Positions 25,011-31,021 of a stretch of 64,000 nucleotides of DNA are shown here, piece after piece. The translations under genes and the position numbers were made by a program. The notes below the pieces were generated by a model, which saw only the letters and a program-made list of their open reading frames with translations, was not told where the DNA came from and did no database searches. How positions within the stretch are numbered: the stretch's first letter is position 1; each line of letters opens with the position of its first letter. Origin of the DNA: Paraphysomonas bandaiensis (Eukaryota; Protista; Chrysophyceae); the NCBI GenBank assembly GCA_965644295.1, contig CBFFRP010000167.1, forward strand, positions 62,001-126,000. The letters are read 5' to 3'.

Positions 25011-25923
25011 TTAATAGAACAGCATCTGTGGAAGCTCTAGAATGCGCTCTTCTATTACACTTTCTGCCGTATCCCTATCTGCTCTAATAGCATCCACAAT
25101 TAGTGATCGTAGCTCCATGTGGCTTCGTGGACCTAGCATCCAGAAATTCCTATCGTCCCTCTGAATTCTAAATCAGTCCCATCATTAACTGCTCTGTGTG
25201 ATAATACCTGCAGCCAATTGTCTTCGTGCATCCGAAACAGAAAACGCTCCGCGTCTCTGTTGGTCCAATCATATCCCTTCTCATGTGCCCTCAGATTATG
25301 AATGGTGTATGTGCTGGAATGGGAAAACAGAGTCAGCAAACGACGCATATAGAAATTGCACATGCCTCAGATGTTTCTCTGTCGCCAGAGCCCTGCACAC
25401 ACTCTTGAAAAATTGAAGCTCTCTAATACAAAAAATTATTCCTCTAATAAAGAACTTGATTTACACATACACTACGGAATAAGGAGATCCGTAAGTAGTC
25501 GCGACATAATCGTCATCCTGACAGTTGCCACATTATTCATTCAATAAAGAATAAAAAAATTACCATATTCGCAGCCCCATGAAACACAGTAACTCCATTG
25601 TCACTAGGCATTCGCAATGTCCGTACCGAAAACCCAAGTGGGTAGAGTATTCTGTTAATTTTTTCGAAAGTGCCTTTCAAGGGATCGTGTCCTAACAAGT
25701 AATAAGAAACCATGCACTTCTCCACTGCATCACATCACTCACCATCGAGAGATATTTTATCAGTAAAATCATTGTTTAACTCAGCAATATATGTCTTGAG
25801 TACGCTGTCTTCGACCATCCCCAGAGACTGTGAGATATAATGAACGGTATTATCATCGACACGAATCGCACTACTCACCATAAGTATCTGCGCAACTGCC
25901 TTCTCGATATCTAATAATGACAT
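25011..25923 (-). CDS. NSE1: NSE1-like (SMC5/6 non-SMC element 1) winged-helix protein, apparently without the C-terminal RING, multi-exon
   Basis: FEKINRILYPLGFSVR..FHGAANM..AERFLFRMHEDNWL..GPRSHMELRSLI resembles the Nse1 WH domains (LGPRxxxEL). The protein ends ERILELPQMLFY* at 25011. Confidence 0.65.
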
Positions 25924-26636
25924 GATACCCTGATATTTCAATCCAGATCAACAGCTAATAAGTGCCATGCAGAGGTACTTTCACATATAAATATCTACTC
26001 ACTGCCTTTCTAGCTACTCTCGTCAATCATATACATATATGGTACGTCGAGCAGTATATGGAACACTGTACGACACTATGGACATAAAAATCGTATACAC
26101 AGGAAGTGGATGAAACTGAAAACTGAACCTATTGAAGATACTCTTCGGATACTGATTTAAAATCAGAAAATACACACAAAAGTATCCAGAATTGGACAAA
26201 AAAAGCCCCTCTATTTTTCCTGTTATTTAATATTTCTCTGGTTTTTACGAAGTAGAATAGATTTTTACAGGATTTCAACAGATTTTCTTGTTCAACGAAA
26301 TTTAATTTAAAAAAATTTAGTTATAAAAAATGCGTAACTAGTTTGATGCACTCAAAAAACTATGACAAGGACATTTTTGGGGCGTTTTTTTCCAAGATCT
26401 TGAATCTGAAATACGCTTCCCTTCTATACTTCTGTATTACGTATGAAATACCACAGTATGATACTATCCAAATGGTATGATCCGCATACCATACTATACA
26501 TACAGCTATACATCTATATACATAGCATACATACATACACATCCACAGGCTGTACCATACAAATAGATATAGATACCGATCAGAGACATCAGCGTGTCAT
26601 CTCATGCCTTATTACTCATACTCTGTGTGAGTTTCA

Positions 26637-29600
26637 ATGGACAGCAGTCATCAACAGCCGCAGCATCACCAGCAGCAAGCAGCGGTGTCTACAGAGGGTC
26701 CAGGAAGCAGTCCTCTGTATCTTCACGACGCCACCTCTGGAGGGGCTGGATACACTCTATCCACACCTACTGTCGGTAGGATCCCTCCTATAGAGTCCTT
26801 ATCTCGCAGTGTGTATCGCATGACGCCCTCTGCCTCTATAGACACTGATTCCTCTATTGCCTCGCATGACTATACAGACACAGCTCACACTGCTACTGTC
26901 AGACACTTGTCGCCCTTCACCACTCCGGAAATGCCGGCTCATACTACGATTTCACGACCGGGGAGTTCACATGTGAAGATAGAACATAAATTGCCTACAC
27001 ATTTACCTACTCAGAAAACCACTAACTCCCAACCCAGTGATGATGATGACGATGACATCTCAGTGTGCCCCCAAGGCGCAGAAGCGACTGGACGGTGGAC
27101 TAAAGAGGAACATGAGCTCTTTCTGGAGGCCCTCAATAAATACGGAAAAGAGTGGAAGAAGGTTGCGGCCATGGTAAAGACTCGTACCGTGGTTCAAACA
27201 CGAACCCATGCTCAAAAGTATTTCCAAAAGGTTCAAAAGTATGTGTTCTCCGACCCTGCTGAGTCCCACGAAGATGTACAACATCCAATGGGTGTTACCC
27301 CACCCTCTGGTGGCAGTGAACATCAAAAGTCTACTTCCAGCAAGCGGCCTCGTACCGATGTGGATCGCATACGACCATTACTATCCTCTCAGAAGCAGCA
27401 GCCTTCATCGAATTCAAAACAGTACGACAGTGACTACTTCTACTGCGACGCAGAAATTCCGCCGGCTTTACGCAATAACTCTACTCCAGTTCAACCCTCT
27501 GGACCTCTTCGTATACCCTCTCGGAATCGCCCTGATCTGCCCCCACCCTCTCCAGCCTCGTGTGGGAAGCGAAAGGCTGTGGAAGTGGCCGTCGCTCAGG
27601 CTTTAACCGGGTCCGCCTCTCCAGTGGACATGGAGAGTGGAATTCACACTCTTGCATCAATGAAAGAAGCTGTATTGCGTCCTCACCCGGCTCTACGTCC
27701 GTCCACCTCCACAGGATCATCAGGAGGTGCGGGCGGTCTCTCTATCATAAATCCGGAGCACCTGCCATCGGCATCTTTTCATTCTGATGATGAACCGCAT
27801 ACACCATGGGATGGTGATATGCGAGAGCTTGAAAAGAAACAACAAATGTCTTCTTCTGCTCAGCTACTAGTCTCTACCACTGCCGAGCAGAACGAGTTCA
27901 TCGGCAATGTGTGCGCGGCAGTTACAACTGGTGATGTAGTGGAGCTTAAACGTCTACTAGAATCGGCAAAAAAAATAGAACCTTTGACCCCTCAAACTTC
28001 GGAGCGTCAAGATGTCGGCAGAGCCAACCTTTCCGGCTCAATATCGTCACCACAATCAACCCCAATGCCCCCTCCTACCTCCTCCAGTGTAGTAGTATCG
28101 GCTGACTCACAAACACAATCTACGCCCCCAAGAATCGCAGACATGTTGAACCGCGTGAACGAAAACGGGGAGTCTGCATTAATGATTGCGTGTTATGGAG
28201 GCATTGACGGCAGAAGGAATGATCAAGAAAAAACACTTGAAATATGCAAGCTCCTTGTGGAAGCTGGAGCCTCCCCCTCTCTCGCCAATATTCGCATGCG
28301 AACCTGTCTGCATATCGCCGCTGAGCGAGGCTTCGAAACTGTCGCTAAGTATGTAGTTCTGAAAGGGTGCCCAGTGAACGACGCGGACGAGAATGGCGAC
28401 ACGGCTGTACATATCGCAGTTCAGTGTGGCCACGTTAAAGTACTTCAGGTACTCATTAATTGCGGTGCTAATTGTCACATTCGCAACCACAATGCACGCT
28501 GTGCCCTTGATATGGCTGTAGACTGCTCAGCGCAAAATTTGTCACGAAAGGATATCCGACAAACTATGCTTATGCTTGAGCCCCGAATGCGGTCGCTAAT
28601 ACTGTACCATGAAGACTGCCTTGAACATGCAGCGCGGCGTGAATCTGACTGGGAGGGACCCGACAGACTGGAGGGTATCATGTCTCTGCTCCAGGATAGC
28701 GGCACATTTGCCTCATACGAAATCGAGATATCTAATCAATTCGAAAAGGCGCACGTAGAGCTTTTGAGCCGTGTGCACTCCCCAGACTATATTGCTTTCG
28801 TGAACACACTTTCCAAACAGGTGCAGGAATCCGGCAAGTTTGCAGCTGCTGCTGTGCCCTTCACACCTCATGTTCAGAAAACGATGATGCGACAAGACTC
28901 GTCAGAGACTAAGCACCCCGAGGTGTGTGACACTTCATTTTCCAGCGGTACACTAAAAGCCGCGAGGCGCGCTGCTGGTGCAGTAGCACACGCTGTAGAC
29001 CGCGTGTTACTGGGCAGGAATCGTAACGCGTTTTGTGTCGTTCGACCACCAGGGCACCATGCAGGATACAGAGGATTGCTCGATGGGGGAAAATCATGTG
29101 GATTTTGTATATTCAATTCCGTAGCAGCAGGGGCTCTTCATGCATTGGAGGCCCACCACTGCGAGCGCGTTGCGATTATTGACATCGATGTGCATCATGG
29201 TGAGATTAAGTACAACACTATACGATGTGTCTTGTTTGATTAAATTGAGAACTATAGGTAATGGGACAGAGGATATAGTACGTCGATACCAACACCCGTC
29301 GCGGTTATTTTTCTTTAGCTTGCACCTCTTTGAGAAGGATGACGAAGTGGATTACGAGTTCTTTCCTGGTAGTGGGGGTGAGGACGACACCACACACAAT
29401 ATTATCAATGTGCCTATTCCTCCCATGTGGCTGGAGTCGAGCGTGTCTTCGCACAGTACTCGGTCAACTGGCAAGCCATCGACCCCTGTAAGTATATGTT
29501 TTATTCCCTGTGGTTTTATCTTAGCGCAATGCACAGTCAACTCGCTCAGGCAGAGATGCTTTCAAACAAGCTATCACCCAACGCCTGATTCCCTCTCTAC

Positions 29601-30006
29601 GCGCATTCTCACCCGACCTTATTCTTCTTTCCACGGGTACGATAGCTAGTATTACCTGAATCATGTCATGTGTATGTGCGCAGGTTTTGATTGTGCGGAG
29701 GGCGATGTTGGTAACATGCGCAATGGCTCAAGTGCCCCTCCAGCACGGGGAATGAATCTTAAACCTATAGACTTCGAGTGGGTGACTATGGAGCTGGTAA
29801 AAATATCAGATATATGTTGCAACGGAAGGTTGGTGAGTGTATTGGAAGGAGGATATGGAACATATCCTACGCCCAGTGGATCGAATGGTAAAAGTTCACA
29901 GAAAAGCAAAGGCAACGGGCTTAATCGCAGTATACTATCAGAGGCTGCATGTGCACATGTTTCCAGGTTGGTAGATCCCTACGGATATGTTGAGCCGACT
30001 CCATAG
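26637..30006 (+). CDS. Fusion protein: SHAQKY-class single MYB domain + ankyrin repeats + class II histone deacetylase domain, 4 exons
   Basis: MYB: GRWTKEEHELFLEALNKYGKEWKKVAAMVKTRTVVQTRTHAQKYFQK. Ankyrins: GESALMIAC, TCLHIAAERG, GDTAVHIAVQCGH. HDAC: EGPDRL, RPPGHHAG, GFCIFNSVA, DIDVHH|GNGT (intron 29200-29257), SLH, GFD, LEGGY. MYB, ankyrins and the HDAC N-half lie in one uninterrupted exon. Confidence 0.93.
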
Positions 30007-30249
30007 GTGTTTTCTAACCATAAGAGAAACGTGATACAGTTGTGCCTTTAGTTTGTGAATTAATTGGTAATAATGATGTCGTTTGTAGTATCGCTTGTAG
30101 TTGCTGCGCTTAGTATCTGATTGTAAGCATACTTTAAGAATGGGAGAAGCTAGGTATACTATTGTAATCACCACCAGAAGTTAATTTACATATATAATTT
30201 ATAATAAGCATATTTGTATGCCGCAAGTAACTAGAAATATTATTCAACC

Positions 30250-30985
30250 TAGTCTAATTGGTTGAATTACGTGGTCAAAGTATACACCTGGTTGAATAAT
30301 GTACTAGATCAACTCAAACAATAAACCCCCATATTTCTATAACAAGTAGTGAATATCTAATACCCCGGATCCCCTTAAGGTGGGCCCAGTCCCGGATGCC
30401 TGTTTATTCGTCAGGGCCCAAAGACATCTACACAAGCATTTGGATATGTGTGGACAGAACAATATCTGCTGACTGTATATATATTATGCGGCTCACGTTA
30501 GTTTCCTGGAGAAATATCTCCGGTACATACCCCCCAGAACACCACGAAAAGATGAAAGTCCGACTTTGTTGAGGGTACAACAAATTCACTCCTACCGCAG
30601 AGGGTACTAAGGGAATAGCAACTGCGAGGTGTTGAAATTGGTACATAAGTGTTATGGTGAATGTTATGACGCAATATAAAGAGATAAGAGTGTCAGAAAT
30701 GTAAACAGCTAGGTGTCATTTCATAGCTGCACTGTTGTAAGTTTGAGGATTACAGCAGAAGATGACTTGGAGTGTTTGATGATCTGATTTTGAAAGTTGA
30801 CATCATTGTGGTTTACCAATAAACGTGTACTATAATAATAAAGTCAAATACGTAATACGATTGTCAATATATATAAATATCATAATTAAGTGATTTTCTG
30901 TCCAAACAGAATATTGAAGTTGAATGTCTATATTTTCCCGGTGCTAACATGAGCTTTCTTTTGAACCCAATTCAGGTCAAAAAAC
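30250..30985 (+). repeat. Degenerate dispersed repeat, copy 1
   Basis: Shares blocks with 39230-39860, 40055-40100, 40720-41140 (reverse), 53990-54670 and 62810-63245 (reverse). Examples: GGGAATAGCAACTGCGAGGTGTTGAAATT, ATTGAAGTTGAATGTCTATAxTTTCCCGGTGCTAA and CACCACGAAAAGATGAAAGTCCG. Boundaries approximate. Confidence 0.8.
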
Positions 30986-31021
30986 ATTGCATAGCATTAC
31001 ATGGTACCAGGGATTCACTTC

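Follow-up and report, generated by a model that had tools for sequence, protein, structure and literature searches.

Zinc-dependent histone deacetylases (HDACs) as a rule depend on separate DNA-binding factors and corepressors for their recruitment to genes. Myb-like folds are recurrent HDAC partners in corepressor complexes, and in Arabidopsis CCA1 and LHY recruit the LDL1/2-HDA6 complex. Class II HDACs with ankyrin repeats directly N-terminal to the Hist_deacetyl domain occur in apicomplexans, oomycetes and algae, including the Cryptosporidium ankyrin-HDAC of Rider & Zhu 2009 (as cited in PMC12246861), Phytophthora infestans HDA2 (PMC4030286) and Phaeodactylum Phatr3_J4423 (PMC11492738, PMC6340190). 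The gene described here lies at positions 26637-30006 (+ strand) of a 64,000-nucleotide stretch of Paraphysomonas bandaiensis DNA (contig CBFFRP010000167.1, positions 62,001 to 126,000; hereafter the window). Its deduced product joins a Myb domain of the SHAQKYF class, ankyrin repeats and a class II HDAC in one chain. We consider it probable that this is an expressed nuclear ochrophyte gene whose product is a class II lysine deacetylase of the zinc-dependent kind, with HDAC6 and HDA15 as its nearest relatives and a DNA-binding module of its own. An earlier reading of the same DNA (the original prediction) had proposed this three-domain composition and had cited the existence of ankyrin-HDACs in protists, and both statements were borne out, the former by Pfam and motif reading and the latter by the Cryptosporidium and P. 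infestans proteins.

The window protein shares the placing of its repeats with the ankyrin-HDACs, and differs from them by the added SHAQKYF Myb and by conserved linker motifs. This distinction is drawn from published and annotated architectures only, and Phatr3_J4423 may hide a missed Myb; the ESM Atlas neighbours were Ank+HDAC clusters only, from Chlorophyta and Bacillariophyta, and carry no Myb information. With HDAC6 and Arabidopsis HDA15 the protein has in common the RPPGHHA, DxDxHHGNGT, (S/T)GFD and LEGGY motifs of the active-enzyme type, whereas the window family has only one catalytic domain, lacks a ZnF-UBP, and shows a loop six residues longer behind the HH dyad and an insert after GFD. 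HDAC6 and HDA15 in turn are without the N-terminal Myb and ankyrin modules. The single-repeat SHAQKYF MYBs (TIGR01557; Entamoeba 6nvz; plant CCA1/LHY/RVE, MybSt1 and I-box binders) share with the window Myb the H-A-Q-K-Y-F recognition helix and the three-helix fold, but the window Myb reads THAQKYF and is fused to an enzyme, and the comparison with CCA1/LHY/RVE covers the Myb domain only. In the CoREST-HDAC1/2-LSD1 and NCoR/SMRT DAD-HDAC3 assemblies a Myb-fold domain and a deacetylase act jointly on chromatin, as is proposed here, although these are separate polypeptides with a class I HDAC, and the window protein is one chain with a class II HDAC. A fusion in cis of a Myb-like domain with a histone-modifying hydrolase is found in MYSM1 (a SANT-SWIRM-MPN histone H2A deubiquitinase); that animal protein is a JAMM deubiquitinase without ankyrin repeats, whereas the window protein is a predicted zinc deacetylase that would act on another mark. 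The three-domain architecture is already present in databases under automatic names such as 'SHAQKYF class myb-like DNA-binding protein' and 'histone deacetylase'. Full-text literature searches turned up no description or test of the Myb+Ank+HDAC fusion, although an earlier mention in Rider & Zhu 2009, in Iyer et al. 2008 or in subscription journals is possible. Ankyrin-HDACs have been described before, class II HDACs and SHAQKYF Mybs are textbook domains, and the new part appears to be a conserved, expressed Myb fusion family for which no functional study was found.

The ATG at 26637 opens a + strand open reading frame (ORF) which has its in-frame stop at 29243 in the ORF list. Three introns, all GT..AG, were read from the DNA, giving four exons and a coding sequence of 3216 nt (1071 codons, stop excluded). 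Contigs from four public runs (X1, X4, X5 and X14) were aligned to positions 25400-31000 of the window; X5 is a poly(A) marine metatranscriptome and X14 is a DNA run. The gene model obtained was as follows.

26577..26636, + strand: 5' leader of the mRNA (RNA contigs start at 26577 in X4 and at 26583 in X1)
26637..29199, + strand: coding part of exon 1, amino acids 1-854 plus 1 nt (ORF, Pfam, donor GT at 29200, RNA joint 29198/29257)
29200..29257, + strand: intron 1, 58 nt, GT..AG (removed in X1, X4 and X5, kept in the DNA run X14)
29258..29487, + strand: exon 2 (DNA reading and RNA contigs)
29488..29536, + strand: intron 2, 49 nt, GT..AG (DNA reading and RNA contigs)
29537..29636, + strand: exon 3 (DNA reading and RNA contigs)
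29637..29683, + strand: intron 3, 47 nt, GT..AG (DNA reading and RNA contigs)
29684..30006, + strand: coding part of exon 4, with the stop TAG at 30004-30006 (ORF, DNA reading and RNA contigs)
30007..30093, + strand: 3' untranslated region, to the ends of the RNA contigs (30090 in X1, 30093 in X4)

In X4 a single contig of 3363 nt was made up of 26577-29198, 29257-29487, 29537-29635 and 29683-30093, with all three introns removed. In X1 the transcript was covered by two overlapping spliced contigs (26583-27997 and 27968-30090), and the splice joints in the X5 contigs were identical to those of X1 and X4. The DNA run X14 gave one unspliced contig (25400-30263) without splice joints. As spliced contigs in independent RNA runs span all three domains, the Myb, the ankyrin repeats and the HDAC are carried by one mature mRNA. 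The original prediction would have been undermined by transcripts in which the Myb is spliced out or bypassed; the 5' end of the assembled transcript instead lies about 60 nt upstream of the ATG and the Myb is included. A loose poly(A) end of X1 at 27968 might have marked an internal transcript end; this was rejected, as the two X1 contigs break at a genomic run of eight A (27968-27975) which the X4 contig crosses. The 60-nt leader also contains an upstream ORF (26604-26630) of 8 codons, MPYYSYSV, plus a stop, which is in frame with the ATG at 26637 and ends 6 nt before it.

The single 2563-nt first exon holds a disordered N-terminus, the Myb, the linker motifs, the ankyrin repeats and the first half of the HDAC domain, in agreement with the earlier claim that the junctions from Myb to HDAC lie within one exon of about 2.5 kb and do not reflect a faulty gene model. 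Such an artefact, with two neighbouring genes merged or with the Myb exon lying outside the mature mRNA, is hardly conceivable, as all three domains begin in this uninterrupted exon, one spliced RNA contig covers 26577-30093, and the arrangement recurs in a paralog and in transcript-derived proteins of many species. The single exon and the spliced contig rule it out for the major assembled transcript. The protein features considered below are the following.

27090..27230, + strand: SHAQKYF-class Myb, amino acids 152-198 (PF00249, TIGR01557, match to 6nvz, AlphaFold2, conservation)
27342..27353, + strand: basic patch KRPR, amino acids 236-239, a candidate nuclear localisation signal (basic-motif scan; KRxR consensus kept in the family)
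27543..27674, + strand: conserved linker motif PPSPASCGKRKAVEVAVAQALTG and the next helices, amino acids 303-346 (invariant columns P304-E316)
27795..27977, + strand: TPWDG motif and helix (amino acids 387-404), then a helical pair (amino acids 415-447) before the ankyrin repeats (alignment and AlphaFold2)
28131..28556, + strand: ankyrin block, amino acids 499-640, about three canonical repeats with capping helices (Pfam, AlphaFold2)
28578..29865, + strand: class II HDAC catalytic domain, exons 1-4 (PF00850 in three ORF pieces)

The catalytic domain was recognised from exon 1 alone (PF00850 Hist_deacetyl, amino acids 673-856, E 7e-35, profile positions 3-155, 121.2 bits against a cut-off of 27.9), and two downstream ORF pieces, in exons 2 and 4, extended the match to profile positions 154-207 and 234-285. 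The catalytic residues named in the original prediction were all found in the DNA reading. The RPPGHHA motif contains the HH dyad (29055-29060), the DIDVHH/G-NGT motif runs across intron 1 with the zinc ligands Asp (29187-29189) and His (29193-29195), the STG/FD motif runs across an intron with the zinc-ligand Asp (29689-29691), and the LEGGY motif carries the catalytic Tyr (29854-29856). Residues H807, H808, D849, D851, H853 and H854 were invariant in 35 homologues. Read from these motifs, the catalytic site is intact, with its HH dyad, Asp-His-Asp zinc ligands and LEGGY Tyr.

The top solved matches of the catalytic domain were HDAC6 CD1/CD2, the HDAC-like Burkholderia 5ji5 and Arabidopsis HDA15. 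The best 60 solved matches were all HDAC6, HDAC10, HDAC4, HDAC7, HDA15, Hda1, Clr3 or bacterial HDAH/APAH, and the domain was assigned to class II because no class I chain was among them (0/60). The complete homologue P0025 aligned motif for motif with HDAC6 CD2. Exon 2 alone gave no match at E<=1 to solved structures, and exons 3 and 4 alone gave weak HDAC-like matches only; these pieces are too short for such a search, and they are covered by Pfam and by the homologue alignment.

The Myb domain was found by PF00249 (Myb_DNA-binding, amino acids 152-196, E 1.7e-13, 50.9 bits against a cut-off of 24.4), and its placing in the SHAQKYF class, which had been predicted, was upheld by TIGR01557 (myb_SHAQKYF, amino acids 153-198, 47.1 bits against a cut-off of 29.3). 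The THAQKYF motif itself (amino acids 190-196, 27204-27224) carries a Ser-to-Thr variant common to other Mybs of the genome. The best match among solved chains was 6nvz (E 5e-13), a SHAQKYF-family Myb of Entamoeba annotated as DNA-binding (PMC8854648). An AlphaFold2 model of exon 1, run with a 35-sequence alignment, gave a confident three-helix domain at amino acids 151-204 (predicted local distance difference test, pLDDT, 84-96; helices 156-169, 173-180 and 185-203). The Myb region (amino acids 147-201) has a net charge of +6 and an isoelectric point of 9.9, and the helix is rich in Lys and Arg. The acidic surface, without a basic recognition helix, of the histone-tail-binding Ada2 and SMRT SANT2 type is thus not what is seen in this domain.

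Six SHAQKYF-class matches were found in the organism's own genome, and the two HDAC fusions scored highest. Three were stand-alone Myb exons (C208:26585-26725, C69:110737-110874 and C445:145314-145451), which read THAQK(Y/V)F and differ little from the HDAC-fused Myb in helix 3; a fourth non-fusion match, on C422, was of the GARP type with SHLQKYR. Because the recognition helix is extremely constrained, the domain is basic and a member of the SHAQKYF class, and the stand-alone Mybs share its helix 3, we favour a predicted role in recognition of DNA over a histone-binding SANT role. One X5 contig matched only the 128-nt Myb core (27096-27223) and diverged for more than 250 nt on either side. 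This contig probably represents another Myb gene or a related organism, and the Myb core would then be conserved in its nucleotide sequence as well.

A word-index search retrieved hundreds of relatives, the best of them 62% identical. The THAQK[YF]F motif was found upstream of the PPGHH HDAC motif in 98 of the 128 retrieved homologues. Many entries lacking a Pfam Myb start from a Met within that domain (..AAM/VKTRTVVQTRTHAQKYF, where the start reads MVKTRTVVQTRTHAQKYF; for example P0030 and P0040-P0071), and such entries are, on the evidence of their start sites, truncated gene calls and not Myb-less proteins. Counts of architectures in databases consequently under-report the Myb fusion, since many entries are truncated inside the Myb. 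As these homologues show, the combination of Myb, Ank and HDAC, for which the original prediction had proposed a domain-architecture search, is not confined to this organism. Members were found in centric and pennate diatoms (Skeletonema, Thalassiosira, Pseudo-nitzschia, Fistulifera, Amphora, Epithemia, Mayamaea, Nitzschia and Cylindrotheca), in the bolidophyte Triparma, in the brown alga Ectocarpus and in the chrysophytes Ochromonas, Epipyxis and Chrysophyte H1. By cluster membership, a Bolivina transcriptome entry also belongs to the family; a diatom origin is suspected because this entry falls in the Skeletonema clade. Judged by these relatives, the window gene is one member of a large conserved ochrophyte family and not a one-off of its genome.

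A paralog with the Myb-ankyrin-HDAC architecture lies at C430:162017-165520 of the same 62.6-Mb genome, with its first intron at the matching place (after DIDVHHG). The two copies were 68% identical in exon 1, the figure rising to 87% for the ankyrin and HDAC N-terminal region. An allelic copy was ruled out by the 68% identity over exon 1 and by the divergent N-terminus and linkers. The window gene and the paralog came out as sisters (Shimodaira-Hasegawa-like approximate likelihood ratio test, SH-aLRT, 99) when a tree was built from the ankyrin plus HDAC N-terminal region; the pair fell within a clade of 20 proteins from metagenome and public-run assemblies, separate from the clades of chrysophytes, Ectocarpus and diatoms.

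Conservation was assessed in an alignment of 35 family members, in which the invariant columns clustered in five places: the Myb, a PSPAxCGxRKxxE linker motif, a TPW motif, the ankyrin repeats and the HDAC active site. In the Myb, 26 positions between G147 and Q197 were invariant. Mean pairwise identities by region were as follows.

Myb: 0.84
HDAC N-terminal half: 0.64
PSPA motif region: 0.48
Ankyrin block: 0.35
Linkers: 0.15-0.30

By this measure, the Myb is the best-conserved and most constrained part of the family proteins.

Disordered segments (amino acids 1-150 and 205-310) flanked the Myb in the AlphaFold2 model, and exon 1 was laid out like beads on a string, with the HDAC N-terminal half after the ankyrin block. 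The N-terminus did not have the look of a signal peptide by eye, and both the KRPR and the CGKRK basic patches are conserved in the family. The linker motif region at amino acids 303-346 had a mean identity of 0.48, against 0.18 in the flanking linker, and helices were modelled at 313-346 with pLDDT 54-61. In the TPWDG region, T389, P390 and W391 were invariant, and a short helix (390-404) and a confident helical pair (415-447) had pLDDT values of 74-95. These motifs, PSPAxCGKRK and TPWDG, suggest further partner contacts. The ankyrin block was modelled as paired helices with pLDDT 94-98 and was matched by Ank, Ank_2 and Ank_4 at about amino acids 532-617 (Pfam, E 1e-16 to 1e-17). As in the ankyrin-HDAC family, the repeats (amino acids ~499-640) stand directly before the HDAC (from amino acid ~648) in the same exon. 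A predicted complex between the Myb (P0025:45-105) and the ankyrin-HDAC body (P0025:280-960) scored 0.00, with controls not run, and this score speaks neither for nor against an intramolecular docking of the SANT-like kind.

Plausibly, the Myb would make this protein a one-component, sequence-specific deacetylase, and several points weigh against that reading. The exons of the window gene were searched singly, and statements on the full-length protein rest on complete homologues. The word depth of the 3' contig in X1 was twice that of the 5' contig, and a minor transcript starting downstream of the Myb, which would be compatible with the assembled contigs, may exist beside the major one. Among the further solved matches of the Myb, the SANT domain of MYSM1/KIAA1915 (2cu7) was second best overall (E 1.5e-10); c-Myb repeats followed, and CoREST SANT2 (~E 2e-7) and SMARCC (~E 6e-5) were also significant. 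In its sequence the Myb thereby resembles domains of the SANT type, through which chromatin enzymes are anchored with no preference for a sequence. A serious rival to a sequence-specific Myb is an anchor like CoREST SANT2 or MYSM1 that holds DNA non-specifically: the domain would bind nucleosomal or linker DNA without regard to sequence, or would bind histone tails, and targets would be chosen through partners of the ankyrin repeats or of the linker motifs, whose conservation is in line with such contacts. We judge this rather unlikely, as the Myb lies above the curated SHAQKYF cut-off and has a SHAQKYF Myb as its best solved match, is strongly basic, unlike the acidic histone-binding SANT domains, and keeps an invariant helix 3 which is nearly the same as in the stand-alone Mybs of the genome.

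A second difficulty concerns the substrate. Class II HDACs of the HDAC6 type often use non-histone substrates, and the nearest relatives of the catalytic domain are HDAC6, bacterial HDAC-like amidohydrolases and acetylpolyamine amidohydrolases; the automatic names given by the Joint Genome Institute (JGI) include 'acetoin utilization deacetylase AcuC-like enzyme'. The enzyme might thus work mainly on transcription factors, cytoskeletal proteins or small acetylated amines, with the Myb serving for protein contact or catalytic regulation. A highly conserved basic Myb, together with basic patches resembling nuclear localisation signals, fits a nuclear, DNA-associated protein, and mainly non-histone activity seems improbable.

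For a self-targeting deacetylase, the following mechanism can be envisaged. The N-terminal single-repeat Myb, carried on long disordered linkers, would bind DNA through the invariant helix 3 (KTRTVVQTRTHAQKYF), probably at a short site of the GATA/I-box or evening-element-like kind, such as other SHAQKYF Mybs recognise. Binding would bring the ankyrin-HDAC body to neighbouring nucleosomes, where a histone tail or a partner protein might be bound by the ankyrin repeats, and the HDAC would strip acetyl groups, leading to lower local transcription. Because the recognition helices are almost identical, the fusion might also compete with the stand-alone Mybs at shared sites as a built-in repressor. 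For the Myb-Ank-HDAC protein we thus infer a nuclear location, DNA binding, sequence specificity, a histone substrate and a repressive outcome, while its gene structure, its expression as one mRNA, its domain identities, its intact catalytic site and the conservation of its family are shown directly. The diel or clock role which had been suggested earlier was not supported, and CCA1/LHY/RVE form only one branch of the SHAQKYF class.

Two features of the neighbouring sequence were recorded. Just downstream of the HDAC gene, a dispersed repeat of ~215 bp is present at 30359-30576 (within 30262-30640). A first look gave 2197 candidates in the organism's own genome, and the scored copies were 78-88% identical and lay on many contigs. 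Its word depth was ~1e5 in X14, against 95 for the flanks, and it was abundant in the RNA runs too. The repeat looks like an element of the miniature inverted-repeat transposable element (MITE) or short interspersed nuclear element (SINE) type. Upstream, at 25400-25960 on the - strand, lies a divergently oriented neighbour gene with introns of 46-51 nt (CT..AC on the + strand), whose word depth in the RNA runs was far above that of the HDAC gene.

For the family as a whole, it is possible, and we put it forward tentatively, that these proteins are an ancient ochrophyte one-component repressor, present in diatoms, bolidophytes, brown algae, chrysophytes and this lineage, in which a sequence-specific THAQKYF Myb would deliver the attached class II HDAC to its cis-element, where the protein would act without a corepressor complex and would antagonise stand-alone Myb activators at the same site. 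If this is true, recognition and erasure in one chain would offer a simple model of targeted deacetylation. The combination of a DNA-binding domain and an eraser may also provide a ready-made tool design for algae that dominate marine primary production. Members of the family occur in diatom genera used as laboratory models (Thalassiosira, Pseudo-nitzschia and Fistulifera), and functional work on it therefore looks feasible.

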